Positions 1,204 to 51,360 of a DNA stretch of 64,000 nt are shown piece by piece (position 1 is the stretch's first letter; every line of letters begins with the position of its first letter). Both the position numbers and the translations under genes were made by a program. Where the stretch lies: assembly GCF_000315625.1 (NCBI RefSeq), contig NW_005434624.1, positions 182,559 through 246,558 on the forward strand, in the 5' to 3' direction. The DNA comes from Guillardia theta CCMP2712. Taxonomy: Eukaryota > Protista > Cryptophyta. Below the pieces are notes generated by a model, which was not told the origin of the DNA, made no database searches, and saw nothing but the letters and a program-made list of their open reading frames with translations.

Positions 1204-4200
1204 TCAGCCGTGCACCGTTGACGAGCTTCTCGTGAGTCCTTCCCATCCTATTCTCAGCAGATACGAAGGCATCCAGGCGCCCATCTGAATGCTGGCGATC
1301 AACTTCGTCACGAAGTCTTTGGCTGATTCCATGCAGTCCATCGGCAAGGAGAACAGCTGCATCATCAACATCAGACGGCAACTCGAGCACGAGACCATCG
1401 GCTTCACCTGGGTGCGGTCGTACCCCGGGGTCATCGCCCCCCCTGCCAACAACTTCAGCTCAACTGGAGAGGGAGGGCAGCCAGTACATTTGATGTTCCT
1501 TTCAATCTTGTACAGCAGCTTGCGTAGCAGGTCGGGTTTGTTCTGCCTAGTCGCCTGTATCACATCGTCTGCCATCTTTTCCAACACTGCCCTGCTGAGA
1601 TTCCTGGAGAAGAACGTCTGCAAGGAGCCAACTGTCAGGGATGACACAAGGGATGAAAGGCCGTGGCCCGAGACCTTCTTCAGTCCGTACACAAGAAACT
1701 GGGTGAGCAAGATTATGTCTCTCTCAGTAGAGTCTCTTCCCTTGCACCCCTTCTGGTCGTCCTCAAAGATCCTGCACCGCTCCAGTATGAAGTTGACATC
1801 TATCGCGCCCTGCTGAGACAAATGTTGTCCATAGTGAGCATGATCAGCAGAGGCAGCAGCGGGGGAGCTTGTTTGACCCCTGTTCCAACTCTCATCTTCA
1901 CCCACATCCCTAGACGCGTTCAGCTTCATTTCATCCTCGAGCTCTACTTTGATAGAGCTTCCCTTGGCAAGGCCCGCCTCCTGCTCCGACCTCTTTCTCT
2001 TCTTGCTCGAGGCGGTGCCGTGCTTGCCAGGCATCGCTGTCGGTGTGGAGCATTTGGGGTCGCCCTCCTCCATCTCATCCTCTTCTGGGAAGAAAGTCAC
2101 GGTGATATCCTGAGCAGCATCCAAGTCAGCCCAACGACCAAGACTAGCTGCCCGAGCTACCTCATCGGCTGCCCGACTTCGATCGAGCTTCTTGGCGCTG
2201 GAGTACCCTTCAGATCTCCCAGGCTCTGTTGGTCTGATAGAGGCTCTAGAGACACTCTTGGAAGACTCGCGTTTCTTGGAAGATGATGATGGCAGAGAGT
2301 TTCTAGCCAACTCTTCCGCCTCCGGCACCTCCGGGAAGAGCCGTTTCCTCGAGGCGGACTTGGACGCTGCCTTAGCAGAGCCTCGATGGTGCTCGTCACC
2401 ATCCTCCTTGGTTTTGATCGGAAGGAGTTTTCCATCTCGGTATTCGCACTTGAATGCCGCAAGGGCATCGCTGAGTGCCATGTTCATGGATTCAATCACT
2501 ATGCCATCTAGTTGCGATGTCTGTCTGTTCGCATCAGGTCAGGAATGATCGATACCATCACTGAAGACAACCTCTTCGACCAATCCTCGATACTTTGGCA
2601 AACGTTGTTACACTCTACCTGAAGCGACAGACTGCCGTCCTGAAACAGCTTCTCGTCATGGAGGAGCATGATCAGGTCGAAAGCAGGTGGGTACCTTCGA
2701 TCTCGATAGATGCAGAAATCCCCTTGTCGCCTACAAACATTATCAGCTTTCATCTAGGAGGTCTCTGACTTACCTCTCCGTCACGACCGCTGAATGTCAC
2801 GGGCTTGCCCGCTAGTTTCTTTTCCATCTTCATCCATCGCTGCGAGGTGGGAGGGAGCGATCGCTCCCCGTTCTCACGGATCACGTCATGATAGGCCTTC
2901 GAATACGAACCCTCGTTGGTCTGGCGTTGGGTTTCAGCGTTGGAGGTAGCGGCTCCAACCCCATTCCCGCCTCCTTGGATGCTCCCTGCCATTCCGTTGA
3001 GCTGCTGTGCCGATCCCAGGGAAGGAGACAGCTGGTCGACGGGTCTAGCAACGGCTCGAAACGTACGAGCACTGGCCCTCCAAGATGAGAAGAAGATGTG
3101 ATTCAACGTCGGCGGCCACCACGAACCTTCCCTCCCCTCAAACGTCATTGCCCTCTCCGCTCTCTTTCCTCCATCCTCCTGGAGAGGCGTCGCACCATTA
3201 GATAGATGATCGATATCGATAGTGTCTACGTGATTTGACGCTCTAGCATCCACTTTTTCTGAGTTTCGCTCGTCGTTCCCTGCGAGCTCCCGCTGTTTCT
3301 CACCTCGACTATGGTCATCAACAAACAGAGGTGATCTGGCAGACGACATCGCGCTCACGTCGACAAGCTTGAGGGGAGCGTGCCATCGACTGTAGGAGAT
3401 CGAGCCTTTGACAACTTCGGAGACAGCCTCTCGTCCCAGTGCGGAATGCTTCTGCAGCAATTGAACGCACTGCGTCCATTTGTTCTCGCTCAATGGCCAC
3501 AGCATGGGCAGAGTCTGTGCATCAAACCCGACGGTATACTTCAAGTCTCCAGATCCATCAATTATCACCTTGTGATGAGACAGTATCCGAAAAGTGGGCG
3601 ACAATTTCGGGTAGCGAGAGGTCAGAAATTCCTTGAAGTCATGAATTTCCTCCTCTGAGGCAGTTGCCCAGTTGAGAAGCGTGCAAGCGTACCCTGACGC
3701 CGCTTCCTCGCTGATAAGAGATGACTGGCTGCTACCATTAGAGCGGAAGCAATCATCTTGTACAGGCTCATGGTTTGCACCCTCAACCTCCTCCCTTGGC
3801 TTCATTGGAGAGTGCTGTGCTGACAAAACTCTGTACCCGTTGTGCAGAGACAGCCTCACGTCTTCATTCGTCAGACCCAAATCTTGCACACGAAACAAGT
3901 CGGAGGAAGAGGCCCACTGAACTGTTCCAACTTTTGGTCCATGAACGAACTGGATCTGCACCGAGGTACCTAGGGAGGGAGTTGAGTCATTGGTTGGAAC
4001 CTCGAAGCAACAGTGTACCTTCATGTTTCCGAATCTGCATCACGTCCGCATCAAAATAATGCTCTGTGTGGTCGTCCAAGTACAGAACTGCCAAGACATT
4101 GTCTCCCACGCTCAGAGCATGCTCTTTGTCCAGCCTCGTCGATCGTCTCCGTAAGCAGCAAGGGGCTTGCACCCATTGGCACTTTTCTCGAACCATAACG

Positions 4201-4688
4201 TTACAATCCAACCTCTCCATCCATGACAGATCTTGAACACGCAGTGAAGGACTGATTCCCTTGGAGCTCCTGGGTTGGATTCGCTCGATGAGCTTACCAA
4301 AGTAGCTCAAGAAGCCTTCATCAGGGACCTGGAAGACGTTAGGATCCCTTGTGACGAGGCACCGCCCTTGGTTGTCCATGTACAGCAAGACGACATCATG
4401 CCATGAACCGTCGTCACATAGCGCCTCGAACAGAAGGTCGTTGAGAGCATTGCTCCTAGGAGACTTCGATGGCTCTCTCAGACTCGAGAAGGTTCTCTTC
4501 TCAGCGCACTTCTTCTTCCTCAGCATTCTTCCCGAAGCTGCCGGCTGCGGAGCCCTCGGCAGGGGCACGGCGAACTCATGGTCCTTGATCTTAGCCAAAG
4601 AGTCGCTCTCGTTCACGCGCTGCTCAGCATTTGAGCTGCCCAGTCCGTCCATCTCTACGTCGCGGTTTCCTAGAGGGTCTTGGGACAC
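1204..4688 (-). CDS. Multi-exon protein with N-terminal SAWADEE/tandem Tudor-like domain
   Basis: ORFs 3987-4688, 2750-4024, 2508-2753 and 1204-2499 join through short introns (e.g. a 49-nt GTACAC..CCCTAG intron giving KHEG|TSVQIQFVHG). The motifs FEALCDDGSWHDV, LRRRS, VGDNVLAVL and HYFDADV resemble plant SAWADEE (FEAKS.RDGAWYDV...RQRS...GDLILCF...LYFDAHV). Basic NLS-like SKKRKRS downstream. Confidence 0.6.
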
Positions 4689-5073
4689 AACGTGGAGGGT
4701 TGCCTGCCAATCACCTCCTCCTCCCCTCCCTCACGGCATGTGCAGCCATCATATCACGATCTCCTCTCTCTCTTCCTGGCACCTCACACCTCCTCTCTCC
4801 TCTCTCCTCCCTCTCCTCTCAGCCGCCGCCCTTGCATTGCCACCACCGCGTTCGCATGTTCCCGCCCAAAGGTGGTCAGACCGCCAAAGTATCCGAGGCT
4901 ATCCGTGATAGTATCCGTGAGTATCCGCAAGCATCCGGATATCACTGGATCTCCAGCAAATCTCTATGCGGGGGCTGCTGTGCGCGTCGCCCCCGTTAGG
5001 CTGGTGGGGAGGGGGGGGAGGGGCGCCCCTCGTCTACTGCGACTGCCATGCTGGCATGTAGCATCAAGTGACC

Positions 5074-42774: not shown

Positions 42775-43163
42775 GTGACAATTGCCGGTGGGGTACCGTC
42801 GTTTGAGCCACTGGCTTGCCAGTGCCCGGTGCCCCGAGTGACGCCACTGGGCCGCAGCTGCTCTGCCGGGCGCGCCGCTTGAAGGCTTCACATTCCGGAG
42901 GCCGGGCCCGGCCGGGCGCGAACGGCGCCGTGAAGTGGCCCGGCCCATCGGATGACAGCCTCGGAGCCTGAGTAAAGACACTGAGTCAGTCCACAGGCTG
43001 AGCCTGCGGCACGGCGGCGTCCGATCGAACCGTCCCACACTGAGTGGCCGGCCCGGCCCGGGCCGCCGACCGTAGTTCCGAAGTTCTGCTAAACGTCTCC
43101 CACCCACCCCTGGGCGCCCGTCAAAAGTCTTTACTCAAAGTTAAGTTAAAAATCAGTACGAGG
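42775..43163. repeat. GC-rich island F ending in the conserved core (43129-43163)
   Basis: CTTTACTCAAAGTTAAGTTAAAAATCAGTACGAGG is identical to 59678-59712. Inverted partial core TGAGTAAAGAC at 42969-42979. Confidence 0.85.
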
Positions 43164-43219
43164 ATAAGCCACTGCCATGACTTCCCATGAAATTTTTGGC
43201 TCGAAATTTCAAATTTGGG

Positions 43220-44490
43220 ATGATGCACCCCACTCATTGGCAACACGTTACGACCCCTCACCCTTATTACCCTGTGCCATGCTCCACCACCCTACCGTCC
43301 TTCATCACCCCACCCACCCTTTTTGAGTTGTTTGTTTACTAGCACCTTCTTTGAATCATTAGTAAACAATGCTTTTACCTACCCTACCCTGTCCTGGACT
43401 TGTCTACCACCCACCAAGTCCCCCAACATCTTACGTAATCTCTTGACTACTTCGTCAACTACCCCTTATGTTCTGCTCCGCCATGGAACCGAAGGGTGGG
43501 TACTACGCTTTTTAGACACAGGGGCGTCGTAATGGATCCACCCCCTAATTCTAGCAAATGTACCGGTGGGCCTCCCATCCCTAGCCAAAAAAAAAAGAGA
43601 ATCCCCTGTACCACCCTACCACTATGAGTGTAGAACCAGCTAGATAGGAGGGGTATTGAATTACCCTATGTGGGGTTCGGGGGACACACCACCCAATGCA
43701 GGCAGCGGGGTGGGAAAGAATTCTAGAGGCATCCTATTATGAGGTCCTGCCTAGATATTGGTGGGTAGGGGTGTTTTGCAAGAGGATAACTAATACTCAA
43801 GATGGGGTGGGGTACAAGCAAGGGAAAGATCTTTTCAAGCAGGGGTTATTCGATCGAGGAAACCTCAGGGAGTCAGGGGTAGGGTAGGTAGTCGACTTAA
43901 AATTGGGTTATGGCATATAAAGGTTGTAGTGAGGGGTGGGGTGCCGAAGGGTCTTATCTGTCTAGCTTGTACAAGTCGTAAGCTTGTGGGGTCCTAGGAA
44001 CTCTATGAAATGGGGGGTGAAGATAGAAGAATTTTGGTACTGCTGCTAGGACCACTGCAATACGAAACCCTCCAGGCTGTGCCCTCCCACCCCCGTCCCA
44101 GATTTGGGGATAATGAGGAAGTTGGGGGTGGGGTACAGTCAAATTTAAACTTAGAACTTTCGAATTAAACAGAAAGTTTCCAAATATTCAACATGAAGAT
44201 TGAAATTAAGACTCTCAAATACCTGCACCCACATCATCTACCACTGCTTTGAGGGTGGTAGATTTGTGGGGGACGAAAATCGGGGCTAGGGTGGTCAGTA
44301 GCCCCCAGGACAAGGGTCATCGGTTGCATTTGGGCTACAGGGGTACCCACAAACCTCCAGACTTTTTGCAAGGTAGAAGAATTCCCAGTGGGGTAGGTGC
44401 ACCTGGAATTCAATCCTAGGGTGGGGTCCTTGACAGATTTGAAAAGTGAGAGGGTGGGGTAGTGAAGAAAGGGTAGTAGGGGTAGGTGTT
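43220..44490. other. Long ACCCC/GGGGT tract with strand-polarity switch
   Basis: C-rich words on + to ~43620, predominantly G-rich afterwards. Confidence 0.6.
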
Positions 44491-45313
44491 ATTCTGACGG
44501 ATCGATCCGGCCTCTGAGAGGAGCATGGCGGGTCAAGGGCGAGCAGGCATGAGAAGCGAGAGGAAGGAAGATGCGCTTGTTGAGAGCTCTGGATGGAAGC
44601 AGACGCTTGTTCATGGCAATCTACTAACATGGATAGGAAGGAAGTGAGGAGGAGGAGATGTGGACAGATGCTGGAATGGAGGAACTTAAATGTTTTGTTG
44701 GGACGATTGGTCGAGATGACCGCTTTCAATGTCCTGTTCTCGGTGGCCAGCCATGGGCATTACATGAGTCTTGGACGAAGCTATGGCTGAAAACCTGAGA
44801 TAGTGACATCGAGCTTGTGACCTTGTCCGATCAAGCACCGAGGGCGGAAAAACAGTGTTTAGCAGAAGGCACATGGTTGTCTTGAGAGTATGGGATGATT
44901 TCTTAGAATCAAACATCGAAGATCAGCAGATATGTCGGCACGCCATGAATTTATTGAATGTTTCTGTTTCGTAGAGAAGGGGGACATTCAGGTTGTCATT
45001 ATAATAGTGAGTTTGTAGTCGATTCATGAGATGCATAAGACTACTCATACGAACAGGTTTGAAGCTTTAACAAGTAAGGGGAGAGAGTCCAAACATCCAT
45101 GTGTATATGTCAGGTGATGCCAATTTGTTTTCAATGAAATGCTAGTGCAACAAATGTTCATCGAGGGGTTATGCATACAACAGAGAAAAGGGGCACTGCA
45201 ATGAGTATATTGGGCAGCGCGATCGTAGCATTTGTTAACAGGAGACCATCTGGTTGAACATATACTCACTAAGACAATCTCACAAAAATTGAGTGTTCTG
45301 ACGACCTGTGCAG

Positions 45314-46870
45314 ATGATGAAGCGAGTTGTCGTCTTGCAGGGCCTTTTGGCTATTACGGCAACGGTTTCAGCGTTTGCTCCGTATTCCGCCTTGCCCAAA
45401 CCTCTTTCTCCTGCGCTCCATGCTCGTTCGCTCCGATCTTCAAACACTGTGAGGCTTGCTGGATTGAAAATGAGTGAGAATGGAGAGGGCAAGAGGGGAT
45501 CTCTCTTGGGCAAAGCAGCTGCTTTCACTGCTGCTGCTACCATTGCCTTCTCTGGTGGAGCGATGGCTTCCTTCAAGGGCAATGATGCTTTGTCCAAGAA
45601 CGGCGACAACTCCGAGCTCGTCGCCTACTCTGCTGGTTGACCTCGCAGATTCGTGGTGTTGTTATGTTGAATCTTTGGCACAGACTCGTCCAGCGGCAAG
45701 AAGAAGTCCAACCCTTTGAGGTCCTTCCTTAAGGGAGGTTCGAATGTACTTGAATGGTCAACACCATTTCTTTAACTCGTCGGCTGTCAGGAATATCTGC
45801 TACTATCTCCAAGACTGCGGTTGCACCCATTGAGCGCATCAAGCTCCTCCTCCAGGTTTAAGATCAGATCGGGTGACAACAAGCGACTGACTGCATGAGG
45901 CAGGTGCAAGCTACTTCCACTCAGATCACCGATCCCTACAAGGGCATCGTAGATTGTGCCGTCCGTGTGTACAAGGAGCAGGGAGCTCTCGCATTCTGGA
46001 GAGGTGAGCAAAACTGGAATATCAACTGGCTTGTTGAATGCCAATCCAGGAAACACTGCCAACATCCTCAGATACTTCCCTACCCAGGCTCTCAACTTTG
46101 CTTTCAAGGACAAGTACAAGGAGATGTTCTGCAGGCCTGCTGAGGAGGTCTGTGCACACATGCAGTCGATTTGTTGTTTGACATGTTCTTCACAGGTCGG
46201 ATTCTGGTTGTTCTTCCTTGGAAACTTGGCTGCTGGTGGAGCTGCTGGTGCTACTTCCCTCCTCTTCGTCTATCCTCTGGACTTCGCTCGTACCCGCCTC
46301 GGCGCTGACGTTGGCAAGTCCAAGGAGGACAGGCAGTTCAACGGCCTTTTCGACTGCATTGCCAAGATCTACAAGTCTGATGGCATCGGTGGATTGTACC
46401 AGGGATTTGCTGCTTCCATCCTGGGAATCATCGTGTACCGTGCTGCATTCTTCGGTGGGTTTGATACTCTCAAGGCTGTCCTGATGAAGGTTGGATTCGG
46501 CGCTGTTGTCTGGCAGGTCAAGTTCTTTGTGGGTTTGCATGGTGACACAACTGACTGTTTATCTAGGCGTTCCTCGTTGCCGAGTTCACTACTGCTGTTG
46601 CTGGAATCATCTCTTACCCCTTCGATACCGTTCGTCGCCGCCTTATGATGAAGTCTGGCGGAGGCTCTACCATCCAGTACAAGGGAACCATCGACTGCGC
46701 TGTGCAGATCGTCAAGCAGGAGGGAGTCGGCGGGTTGTTCAAGGGCTCTCTTTCCAACGTCTTCCGTGGGACTGGAGCTGCTTTGGTGAGAGAAAAGTTC
46801 TGCTGTCAAGTCTGTTGCTAACCCCTGCCAGGTGCTCGTCCTCTATGACTGGCTCTCCAAGTTCATCTAA
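45314..46870 (+). CDS. AAC: ADP/ATP carrier (mitochondrial carrier family, AAC/ANT type) with ER signal + SAFAP transit presequence
   Basis: Spliced [63 protein letters not shown] and [12 protein letters not shown] (AAC signature). N-terminus [22 protein letters not shown]. Confidence 0.92.
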
Positions 46871-47127
46871 GAGGATATAGCTGACTTGCTAACATGAGGA
46901 TTCAATAAAGGCTGATAGCAAGACCTCCCAGACAAACATGCAATGATAGGTTTATTCACTCAAGAAGGAATAGATACTTCGAGCTTGCGGAATAATCTTG
47001 CATAGACAACGAGGTACACTTCAAATTTCCCTCGCGATCAGTGGAGGACAGAGATGTCCTGACGATTCAAATCTCCTCAAGGCAATCCTCACTTCTTAAC
47101 TGCTGCAATTTCGTGTCACAAACAACA

Positions 47128-48841
47128 TCAAGGACTGCTCAGATAGACACCTGAGGCTACGCATTGCTTAGCCTCGGCCTCCCCGGCAACCTGTTCCATC
47201 GCGTCAGTTCCAGATTCAACCTCCTTCAACTCCTTACAGGGATTCCGAAAAATCGCTTGATAGAGTCGTAGATGAGGAATTGGGCAACAATGTAGGATGT
47301 GACGTGTACACATCGAGCTCCAGCTCCAAGGTAAAGCCCTCGGGGTCCCAACTGTGCAGAAGGAACAAGAAAACATCATCCAGGGACAGATAAGCAGTGT
47401 CCTCTGTCACCTGCTTGATGGCTCCCAGAACGGTGGTTCCAGGCGCTTTGTTCATAACAGACAACACAGTGTCTCCCGGCTACCAGCCCGTGAGACGCAT
47501 ACGCCGTAATCGAAAGCAAAGAGCGGAACCTGTGAAACCAGCGACGCCGTGATTCCTGAAATGAGCCCACATCCCAAAGTCACAGCCGTTCCCACAGTAG
47601 AAGATGCATCCTAAAAAAAAATCAGAAAGAAACTTAGGAGGATAGAACCATACCTTGATGTCAGCCTTGGCAAGCGCAGAATAAACTGCTTTGGCAGCAA
47701 ACTCGTACACCAAGAATTGAGTGATGGTGAAGGGAACTTGCTTGCATTGAATCGGCAAGTACCCACCATAGATTCCACCCAACCCCTTTAGGTCTCTTAC
47801 AAAAAGCTCACAACCCAACAGAAGCTACCTGGGTCTTAACTAGCTTTGCCAGAACTCCAAACATGTTGTTGGCGAACTTGGGATCAGCCACCTTTTGTGC
47901 AAGTCAAGGAAAACGACCCTCCATCAAGGTTTTGGCACCATTCTGATTCGCGCAGATTCGAATGGAAGCAATGCGGTGGTTCCAAGAATCTATACTCCAT
48001 GAGCGGCGTCTCCAAGGACATATACTCTGAAGATACCTCAGCTGCAGACGCTGCAATGATCATTTGGGGGATGGGAAGCTTGCCGCCCTCCTTGAACAAA
48101 GGCGTCAGAAACCTGAGATGACCAGGGGATCAAGCTCACTCCACGCTTCTCGGGAGGCAAACTCTGGGCTAGACTGTCCTTGAAGAACTCATAAAATCCA
48201 TATCTGAAGTTATCACCGTCAAGGTCATGGAAAACGCTGCAAGAAGAGAACTGACTTCAATGCTCCTTGCATCAAAAATCCACAGAACGTCGGAGTCATA
48301 CCCTGCATCAGTCCTCGTGTGCCTTCTTTCTAGAGGAGGAGCCTCAAGTCAGACGCAGGATGAGCTGAGTCACCCTCCTATCAAACCTCATAGATCTTGC
48401 GGATGCCTTCGTTGAGAGAGGAGAACTCCCCAGGATTCACCTGGATGAGAGGTCATGACGTGGACCCTCGTCCTCCTGCAGCACCTGCAGCCTCGTCTTG
48501 ACGACATCAAGTGGGACCGTCACCAAGTGCGTGAGGGATGCGCAGAAGCCTCCGGCAGCAAACAGCTTCGGATACTTCTCAAAGTCCATCTTGGAGGCGA
48601 CAGCCTTGGCCACCGCCGCCTTTGCCATGTGGAATCTTTCTCCCAGGTTTGCCTTATTCAATTGCTGAGGAAAATTCAAGATGCTATTGGCGTCTTGAGA
48701 TCGTGATTTCAATCCGAGGAAGCCCGCATCGGGGTTCCCCAGCGGGAAGGACATGGTACCCGCGCAGTAGGCATATTGCGCGAAGAACAGGGCGGCGGAG
48801 ATGATCCTCAACGAGAGATGCGAGAAAGCACGCATCCTCAT
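47128..48841 (-). CDS. Phosphate carrier (mitochondrial carrier family, PiC/Mir1/SLC25A3 type) with N-terminal signal-peptide-like extension
   Basis: AGGFCASLTHLVTVPLDVVKTRLQ, YGFYEFFK, LPFESARIRMV, KQVPFTITQFLVYE, PGDTVLS and QFLIYDSIKRFFGIP are phosphate-carrier motifs. Confidence 0.85.
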
Positions 48842-49444
48842 AAGATATCAATGAAGTGTGTCAGATAATCTGTTGTGCTTCTCCAGTGAATCTGACGGGC
48901 TACTTCCTGCATTCGAGATCAGCGCCTTGCTGCACATGAAATGTCGAAGTAACTCTCTAGGAGGTGAAAGTTGCAGATGAAAAATGATGTACACGATCAC
49001 GACAAACTGCGGAACATGGAAAGTCGATCATCACTGAGACCAAGTTGATGAACATTCGCACGCAATGGTGGATCACACCCCGACTCTACAAAGCACTGAC
49101 GGGTTGCAAATACATCAAAAAGATAGATTCAGAGTTTAGTTGAGAATATTGCTTTCATAGCAATACATGATGAAGGAAACATATATGATGCAAAAATTGA
49201 TGCAAAAACGCTTCTAGCTGCACATGCTCTCGGGTCACGTGAACACTTAAAACCAAATGCTTGAATGCTACTTGCACGAATGGAAACTTGTCAAGGCATG
49301 TAAAGAAGAGGAGGACAATGCTGAGACACATCATAAGCTTTCAGGCCCTGAAACATCTCTGCAAGTGTACATGCTCCAGCCTCCCCGAAGCCTCTCAGGA
49401 CATGCAGGGGCGTAGCTTGAGCGGGAGCGGCATGAGCGGAGGCG

Positions 49445-50790
49445 CGGGGTAGGGGAAATTTAGGGGTGGGGGTGGGGGGTGGACAGGATTTCTTGGGGGT
49501 AAGGGGGTTAGAGTTGGGTCTGGAGTAGGGTGGTTGCCTCACTTTCACTCGGCCCAGGGGGAGGGTAGTGGGGGAGGGGAGGTAGCTTTTGTTGGATTCG
49601 AGGGGGGTGAAGGTCCTTCGTACCGACCACCCACCCTGGAAATGGACGCATCATTACCCCTATTCAATATCCACCCACCCTCCCGCTAGGACGAGTTTCA
49701 ATATGAGGGAAGAAGGACTTGCGAACATTAGACGGTGAACTTGAAATATTTCGATGAACTTTGAAATTGCCACGGGCAGCCGCTTGAATGCTTGGAGAGG
49801 CGAACGAAAATTGAACAAAAGGGGTACTCCACGAAAGGGGAGTCCTGGAATACGACCAGGGTCCTGGAATACGATACAGGGGGGGTAGTCTGGCTGAATC
49901 CTGATGACCCTACCCCCCTTTTCCTCATTTGAAACGTATGTTAAACCAACCTACCACCCTCGTTGAATTGGATCTCAGACCCCTCACCCCCATTTTTCAA
50001 GTACCCACCCTTATTAAACCTCATTGTAGACCCAAGCCTAGCCTGCACCCACAAGACGTTACACCCCATGTGAAGCATTTCCTAATTGTTTGAAGGACCC
50101 CTACCCCCAATACGAGATCTACACCCCACTTTCAGGGATCCACCGACCCCTACCACTACCACCCTATCTTTCTACACTCCTTTTATGTATGCAGTAGACC
50201 TCTCGAATCTTCCTCCACCATGCCCTAAAACCACCCCACCCCATGTGTAATTTTCTAATCAAATTTTGAAGTTGGGAGGGTGATTTCGACTACCCCACCA
50301 CATCCAGTACTGACTACACCTACCCTTGGTCAGTACAATCCTTCTCCGTACCCCCGCCCCCCCTGTATCCTCCACCCCCTCCACACGGCCCCACCCCCTC
50401 TGATCGAGGCCCACCGATCTTCGTGATTACGTCGACATGACCCCATTGGGGGTCAGGGGGGAGATGGGGGTACCCCAGCGAGTCTCTAGGAGGGGTGGAG
50501 TTGAGCTACCGTCACTATTGTAGTAGTACAGGGGGTAGGTCATCAAATTCGAGATGTAGGAGAAGGGGTGGGGTACTGTAGAGTGGGGTGATGTAGTCAG
50601 AAAGGGTCACTGCTGCCCATTGAGTGGATGGGAGAGACAACAAGGGATGGGTTGCATGGGAGCACACGTGGTGGGGGTACATCAAGGGGTGGGTCCCTGT
50701 ATAAGGATTGGAAGGGGAATAAGGGGTGATGCTTCAAGTATTTATTTCTGTGGGGTGGGGTGGGCGATACGCCCTGCGGGGAACAAGGGT
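49445..50790. other. Long GGGGT/ACCCC tract with G-C-G polarity blocks
   Basis: G-rich ~49445-49615, C-rich ~49625-50400, G-rich ~50445-50790. Lies 5' of the phosphate carrier gene. Confidence 0.6.
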
Positions 50791-50845
50791 TTGAATGACT
50801 CGATTAGAAATCAAATTTCAGGCTTGGGCGGCTCAGTTTTTTCTC

Positions 50846-51360
50846 TTTACTCAAAGTTAAGTTAAAGCTCAGTACTATGATGATTGCCCGGCCATGCCGT
50901 CCTGGCCAGATCCGGCCGGGCGGCTCCGGGCTCGCCGCGGGCCGCAAGTTGTGACGGCCCTGTCGGAACCCCGGCGGCGCCCGGCCGGCTTCCGAGCCTC
51001 CGTGAGCGGCGATCGGACCGTACTCCGGGACTCCGAGTCCGGCGGAACTTCCGAACGGGCCGCAGCCAGTGGCACCGGGCGCGCGGGCAGTTCAGTGAGG
51101 ACTGAGGGCCCCGGCGGGGCCGGGCAAGAATGTCGAGGTCTCACTGAGCGGCACAATACTTGAGCTTTGATTCTCACTGAGCTGATAGACTAAAATAATC
51201 CCTCACTGTCAGGCTCAGTGCTTGAGGTGTGCACCGTTTGCCATCATTGAGTCCCGAGTTCCCCCGCGGCCCGGGCCGGCCCGGCCCCGGGCCGGCTCAT
51301 CAGTGGTATGGACTCCGGCCAGCCGACTGAGGAGAAACTTGCCAGTGTCCAGGCTCGCCG
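50846..51360. repeat. Conserved core (50846-50863) followed by GC-rich island G
   Basis: TTTACTCAAAGTTAAGTTAAAGCTCAGTACTATGATGATTGCCCGGCC; the tail resembles AGTACTATGATGCAGTGCCCGGCC at 24841. Confidence 0.85.

Follow-up and report, generated by a model that had tools for sequence, protein, structure and literature searches.

We analyzed a 64,000-nucleotide stretch of the genome of the cryptophyte Guillardia theta CCMP2712 (contig NW_005434624.1, positions 182,559 to 246,558; G000:C50:182559-246558 in our notation, and hereafter the window), in which two carrier genes lie tail to tail. An ADP/ATP-carrier-type (AAC) gene occupies positions 45314-46870 of the plus strand and a phosphate-carrier-type gene occupies 48841-47128 of the minus strand, and their stop codons are separated by a shared 3' region of 257 bp (46871-47127). 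The original prediction had placed an ADP/ATP carrier and a phosphate carrier here, about 260 bp apart at their 3' ends and both with signal-peptide-like N-termini, and these points were borne out: both genes have intact spliced frames, Pfam Mito_carr (PF00153) matches stop-free pieces of both, and the maximal Kyte-Doolittle hydropathy over 12 residues at the N-terminus is 2.3 for AAC and 2.0 for the phosphate carrier. The spacing is right only if the final exon of the phosphate-carrier gene (47190-47128) is included; we accepted this small exon because orthologues read VAGE after the GIP residues.

The AAC gene consists of eight exons (45314-45635, 45684-45737, 45791-45855, 45904-46003, 46050-46147, 46196-46516, 46567-46785, and 46832-46870) that encode 405 residues, and its seven introns are all GT-AG introns of 46-53 nt. 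The phosphate-carrier gene has 12 exons (48841-48485, 48440-48387, 48329-48256, 48203-48140, 48090-48037, 47989-47939, 47891-47829, 47785-47654, 47610-47530, 47479-47411, 47351-47238, and 47190-47128) encoding 391 residues; its 11 introns are likewise of the GT-AG type and are 43-59 nt long. The queries for database searches were single exons, stop-free stretches, or database orthologues, and the joined spliced proteins were compared locally. The best match of the plus-strand stop-free piece was P0001 (GUITHDRAFT_73589), which is identical to the spliced AAC from exon 3 onward. This public model has 292 residues and begins at a methionine within intron 2, and exons 1 and 2 (45314-45790), which encode about 125 residues including the whole leader, are missing from it; the spliced 405-residue model corrects this truncation. 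Sequencing runs that appear to derive from RNA contained about half of the words of this stretch, roughly the share taken up by exons, which hints at transcripts.

The sequence of the carrier domain of the plus-strand gene (exons 2-8, 45684-46870) identifies its product as a member of the ADP/ATP carrier family, with ADP/ATP exchange as its predicted activity. The stop-free AAC piece matched bovine AAC1 with an E value of 3e-60, and the orthologue P0007 aligned with residues 8-297 of AAC1 (E 8e-111). Pfam and the latter alignment define three tandem Mito_carr repeats and six helices. A motif scan found the signature that follows helix 5, RRRMMM in canonical carriers, as RRRLMM (residues 343-348 of the spliced protein), and the matrix salt-bridge motif PX[DE]XX[KR] is intact in all three repeats (PIERIK, PLDFAR, and PFDTVR). 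The core of the protein is 64% identical to the AAC of the red alga Cyanidium, and the protein is 54% identical to a second, leaderless AAC of the same genome (on G000:C60), which is canonical, has a short N-terminus, and carries RRRLMM. In a tree built by a quick method, the leader-bearing proteins form a monophyletic clade with a support of 95 in the Shimodaira-Hasegawa-like approximate likelihood-ratio test (SH-aLRT); the tree does not separate a red-algal from a host origin. A further AAC-like gene on G000:C62 (L002 1480-2684, minus strand) has a short N-terminus, and its signature reads RRNMMM instead of RRRMMM.

About 110 residues precede the carrier domain of AAC, and they comprise a signal peptide, a transit stretch, a basic-hydrophobic-AMA segment, and a polar linker. 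The signal peptide (residues 1-20, 45314-45373) ends in VSA before F21, which gives a site of the AXA-FXP type (VSA-FAP). Such a site has been reported for the lumenal phycoerythrin subunits of G. theta, which have three-part leaders (PMC5784005), and an aromatic first residue of the transit peptide is an accepted mark of plastid import as opposed to retention in the periplastid compartment (PMC4494062). The transit-peptide-like stretch that follows (residues 21-52, 45374-45469) has 5 K/R, 6 S/T, and no acidic residue among its 32 residues and is thus net positive. The second targeting element (residues 53-85, 45470-45568) has a basic n-region with KR and KK, an alanine-rich hydrophobic core with a 15-residue Kyte-Doolittle maximum of 1.45 at residues 64-78, and an AMA end; it lacks a twin arginine and resembles a thylakoid transfer signal. 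On its sequence it could be a Sec-type signal, a spontaneously inserting segment, or a retained helix. The same layout is common to all relatives examined (six proteins from databases and those encoded on five environmental contigs), the motif [AV]SAF[AS]P is kept in 9 of 9 aligned relatives, and the hydrophobic core of the second element is the best-conserved part of the leader. Because it combines the VSA-FAP site with a transit peptide and a lumen-type segment, AAC should enter the plastid proper and not the periplastid compartment, and the leader points to an inner plastid membrane rather than the periplastid space. Our somewhat favored prediction is the thylakoid membrane; the inner envelope, reached by conservative sorting, is a clearly less probable destination. 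Of the original prediction of a module for the complex plastid or periplastid compartment, the plastid part is thus supported for AAC and the periplastid part is not.

Two further carrier genes of the genome, L067 1234-2559 (G000:C83) and L069 1354-2631 (minus strand, G000:C11), are paralogous to each other and encode signal peptides that end in SHA and AHA, respectively, before F; on their sequences, they are examples of the aromatic +1 rule in the carrier family within this genome. A carrier gene at L012 1441-2940 (minus strand, G000:C40) encodes, ahead of its carrier domain, a serine-rich stretch, after which come RRGS, a hydrophobic core, and ASA in an arrangement that resembles a twin-arginine lumen signal.

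The minus-strand gene belongs to the phosphate-carrier family but not to its canonical mitochondrial type, so that the original assignment held for the family alone. Its product is 75.5% identical to P0156 of Hanusia phi and 68% identical to P0154, the product of a full-length transcript. Named relatives include fungal Cu/Pi (copper/phosphate) carriers, Fusarium MIR1, an Amorphochlora "mitochondrial phosphate carrier protein," and a JGI SLC25A3 call, and the nearest atlas clusters are Pic2 and phosphate carrier (0.94-0.95). The spliced model contains all of the motifs that we take to be typical of PiC proteins: TH in helix 1, QG..K[FY]G.YE.FK in helix 2, KQ[IV]P[FY]T in helix 4, and S-x-P-x-D-T in the third repeat. 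The last of these reads SQPGDT, as compared with SHPADT in the canonical phosphate carrier of the same genome (on G000:C2), which lacks a signal peptide and shares 34% identity with the window copy. We used the full-length orthologue P0154 as the query of an exhaustive profile search and then built a tree with FastTree. In this tree, a cryptophyte clade (Guillardia, Hanusia phi, Rhodomonas abbreviata, and further transcripts) is nested within a superclade characterized by S[QH]PGD and lies apart from the canonical SHPAD/SQPAD clades. We rejected membership in the canonical mitochondrial clade on the basis of this position and the low identity to the genome's own canonical copy. The original prediction had also suggested looking for separate paralogues without N-terminal extensions, and the leaderless copies on G000:C60 and G000:C2 are such paralogues.

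The leader of the phosphate carrier differs from that of AAC. A signal peptide (residues 1-26, 48841-48764, minus strand; Kyte-Doolittle maximum 1.96) with no aromatic residue at the likely +1 position is followed by a spacer (residues 27-85, 48763-48587) that extends to the first carrier helix and contains a conserved FP[LF][GP]. The spacer has 7 K/R and 3 D/E among its 59 residues, and we found no second hydrophobic segment in it (Kyte-Doolittle maximum 0.55) or in any orthologue seen. The orthologues have classical signal peptides that end in ANG, AEA, or SSA. Acidic residues occur early in the phosphate-carrier leader, and F or L stands 2-6 residues past the putative cleavage site, whose position is a guess. 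The AXA-FXP motif is absent from the phosphate carrier, and an aromatic +1 residue is absent from all orthologues seen. The original observation of a non-aromatic +1 residue therefore extends to every orthologue seen, but its reading as a sign of periplastid targeting is less secure, as the feature fits the periplastid side, the endoplasmic reticulum (ER), or a mispredicted cleavage site equally well.

We compared these leaders with those of the S[QH]PGD proteins of other algae. Among non-cryptophyte representatives with a methionine start and an N-terminal extension of at least 60 residues, crude hydropathy rules identified a signal-peptide-like core in 30 of 45 S[QH]PGD proteins, and 26 of the 45 also had a second hydrophobic segment; the same count for the canonical phosphate-carrier type gave 2 of 19. 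In many of the non-cryptophyte S[QH]PGD leaders a small-x-small site precedes an aromatic residue, and clear twin-arginine motifs are present in two. In ochrophytes and other algae, such proteins (P0165, P0169, P0186, P0247, P0256, and others) commonly have leaders in which a signal peptide is followed by a transit peptide with an aromatic residue at +1 and by a second hydrophobic segment ending in AxA; some contain RRxF. Because of these leader counts, the subfamily as a whole looks plastid-directed and often thylakoid-directed, which points to a widespread thylakoid phosphate-carrier-like family of which we found no description. The cryptophyte clade is an exception within the superclade, with a signal peptide followed by about 60 residues and no aromatic +1 residue. 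The G. theta genome has a second paralogue of the S-Q-P-G-D type (L031 ~3078-5050; G000:C81:333.5-335.6 kb), which is 54% identical over one exon to an ochrophyte protein with a three-part leader and resembles that protein more closely than it does the window gene; repeats and assembly gaps in this region kept us from locating its N-terminus. Judged by this resemblance, it could be a thylakoid-type copy.

The two genes are also neighbors in relatives. We used orthologue queries to compare locally the contigs that encode phosphate-carrier orthologues, and we found that a leader-type AAC gene adjoins the phosphate-carrier gene in five distinct environmental taxa (L019/L041/L043, L021/L054, L020, L062, and L065, as distinguished by megablast; GC content 0.48-0.68). 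The linkage that the original prediction had proposed to look for thus exists, but in a different arrangement: the genes are always on opposite strands and head to head, with start-to-start distances of about 0.75, 1.16, and 1.4 kb in the cases that allowed both starts to be located. Of the genomic contigs that include the 5' end of the phosphate-carrier gene and extend far enough upstream of it, all but L022 carry a leader-type AAC gene. In L022, no AAC was present in the 2.3 kb upstream; this contig may have a longer spacer or may lack the linkage. A tblastx comparison of the window from 30 to 64 kb with the linked contigs gave no convincing match beyond the two genes, and the pair has therefore been kept where the remaining neighbors have not. 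G. theta has about 25,000 genes. At least about 60 of its loci belong to the carrier family, and the chance that this AAC would adjoin one of the approximately four phosphate-carrier-type genes is about 3 in 10,000 in order of magnitude. Because the adjacency outlived both a change of orientation and the loss of other synteny, it would be difficult to account for if the genes had no functional connection.

The convergent order was seen only in G. theta, and a local rearrangement is therefore needed to account for it. About 35 kb away lies a 601 bp copy of the 5' end of the phosphate-carrier gene (L032 4174-4772; G000:C50:266174-266772), which is 95% identical to positions 48398-48982 of the window and runs from upstream of the gene through exon 1 and intron 1 into exon 2, most of which it includes. 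No further phosphate-carrier exons follow it. The copy is probably a gene fragment left by rearrangement, and it may be a trace of the event that produced the convergent order. As the original prediction had it, ACCCC/GGGGT-rich tracts lie on either side of the pair, at about 43.0-44.5 kb (43001-44500) and 49.0-51.0 kb (49001-51000); they show strong GC skew. Such tracts are common across the window, however (213 observed versus approximately 125 expected), and so we see nothing specific to the pair in them.

Starting from the observed gene structures, family membership, leader anatomy, and conservation of both leaders and linkage, we think that there is a somewhat better than even chance that the pair is a conserved cryptophyte two-gene unit comprising complex-plastid versions of the carriers that supply mitochondrial ATP synthase. 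In the mechanism that we propose, AAC would enter the ER through its signal peptide and would then be carried over the periplastid membrane and the envelope by virtue of its aromatic +1 residue and transit peptide, after which the basic-hydrophobic-AxA segment would insert it from the stroma into an internal membrane. Its N-terminus, and hence its "cytosolic" face, would then lie away from the stroma, and its "matrix" face would lie toward it; this orientation would be the same whether the second segment is cleaved or kept, because the start of helix 1 is trans-stromal in either case. The stroma, like the mitochondrial matrix, would be the ATP-producing, electrically negative side, and AAC would move stromal ATP4- to the positive side (the lumen or the envelope space) in exchange for ADP3-. 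The phosphate-carrier-type protein, predicted to reside in the ER-plastid membranes, would carry back the inorganic phosphate that this ATP releases, in symport with protons. A broader proposal, which we consider speculative and rather unlikely, is that the plastid powers a compartment that makes no ATP itself, which would be either the periplastid space, where the nucleomorph and ribosomes lie, or the thylakoid lumen, filled with phycobiliproteins. The retargeted AAC would export stromal ATP to this compartment, the linked carrier would return phosphate, and the pair would be co-regulated across the group.

Several observations weigh against a two-gene unit of this kind. The leaders differ, in that the phosphate carrier lacks both an aromatic +1 residue and a second hydrophobic segment in every orthologue seen, and the two proteins may therefore not share a membrane. 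The second segment of AAC has no twin arginine, is unusually conserved for a cleaved signal, and could be a seventh helix; an AlphaFold2 model of P0007 built from 11 sequences had a mean predicted local distance difference test score (pLDDT) of 33 and was unusable for judging how such a helix would pack. Our targeting calls were made by motif rules and hydropathy. The environmental taxa were placed among the cryptophytes only through their nearest named kin, Hanusia, Rhodomonas, and Guillardia. Finally, because the G. theta pair is convergent, it has no shared promoter, although the divergent arrangement in the relatives could share one.

In a rival explanation, the two proteins work in different compartments. 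AAC would reside in the thylakoid, the phosphate carrier would be located in the ER, the outermost plastid membrane, or the periplastid membrane, and the linkage would reflect shared regulation or history rather than a single exchange module. The consistency with which the two leader types differ in all orthologues favors such a separation, and the S[QH]PGD-type paralogue on G000:C81, being nearer to the clade with three-part leaders, could be the thylakoid partner. We nevertheless regard separate compartments as the less likely explanation, because the two genes have stayed adjacent although their relative orientation changed and all other synteny was lost, and because the S[QH]PGD subfamily is otherwise plastid-directed. 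A presequence or dual signal at the N-terminus of the phosphate carrier, which would make the gene a second mitochondrial phosphate carrier, appears very improbable. Animal and plant phosphate carriers have presequences, and the N-terminus of the G. theta protein is arginine-rich ahead of its hydrophobic core; signal peptides that were read as presequences have also been reported for G. theta (PMC4494062). On the other hand, the orthologues begin with plain hydrophobic signal peptides that contain few charges, the genome encodes a canonical leaderless phosphate carrier, and the subfamily is rich in plastid-type leaders.

It is also conceivable, but improbable, that the AAC-type copy has changed its substrate to 3'-phosphoadenosine 5'-phosphosulfate (PAPS), ADP-glucose, or other nucleotides, as in plant TAAC/PAPST1 and Brittle-1, and that the pair is not an ATP/phosphate module. 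The plastid carriers of the superfamily often have unexpected substrates (PMC5948301), and the third cytoplasmic-network motif of the G. theta protein is shifted by one residue (YDWLSK). The intact RRRLMM and the three intact PX[DE]XX[KR] motifs, the identity of the core to red-algal AAC, and the close match of an orthologue to bovine AAC1 argue for retention of ADP/ATP exchange, and we therefore continue to favor a pair of plastid carriers that handle adenylate and phosphate. If so, the pair provides concrete, testable candidates for the supply of ATP to the inner compartments of complex plastids, which is poorly known. In cryptophytes, the compartments concerned are the periplastid space, with its remnant of a nucleus, its ribosomes, and its starch synthesis, and the thylakoid lumen, which is packed with phycobiliproteins. 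The pair would also be a rare eukaryotic case of conserved linkage between unrelated but functionally matched genes.

A literature search of incomplete coverage, which is not proof of novelty, yielded no account of a cryptophyte plastid AAC or of the gene pair; the plastid proteome of Bigelowiella lists an unplaced "adenine nucleotide translocator" (PMC3542566). Bovine AAC1 (SLC25A4, PDB 1okc) shares with the G. theta AAC the full carrier domain, the RRRLMM signature, and the three PX[DE]XX[KR] motifs, but the G. theta protein has approximately 110 extra N-terminal residues that form a three-part plastid-type leader, and its genome also holds a separate leaderless AAC. The mitochondrial phosphate carriers (SLC25A3, yeast Mir1/Pic2) resemble the minus-strand product in family and in having S-x-P-x-D-T instead of PX[DE]XX[KR] in the third repeat, but the window protein is only 31-34% identical to canonical members, falls into the S[QH]PGD clade, and has a signal peptide. 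The plastid nucleotide transporters (NTT) of diatoms and cryptophytes likewise serve adenylate supply or exchange over the plastid envelope membranes (PMC6995639); they belong to an unrelated family of bacterial origin, however, and are thought to import ATP rather than export it. In Phaeodactylum, the phosphate transporter Phatr3_J11866 (bioRxiv 10.1101/2024.12.16.628690) and the carrier MCFc Phatr3_J46742 (bioRxiv 10.1101/2025.02.14.638225) are predicted plastid carriers of the superfamily with a signal peptide and an ASAFAP-type leader, and they are enriched in plastid fractions. Neither report describes a plastid-targeted canonical AAC or a gene pair. The closest functional analogue is Arabidopsis TAAC/PAPST1, a member of the same superfamily that is located in the thylakoid and the envelope and delivers ATP to the lumen (PMC5948301). 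TAAC/PAPST1 has been reported only from the green lineage (PMC5948301), whereas the G. theta protein would be a canonical AAC that was recruited independently and equipped with a secondary-plastid leader.

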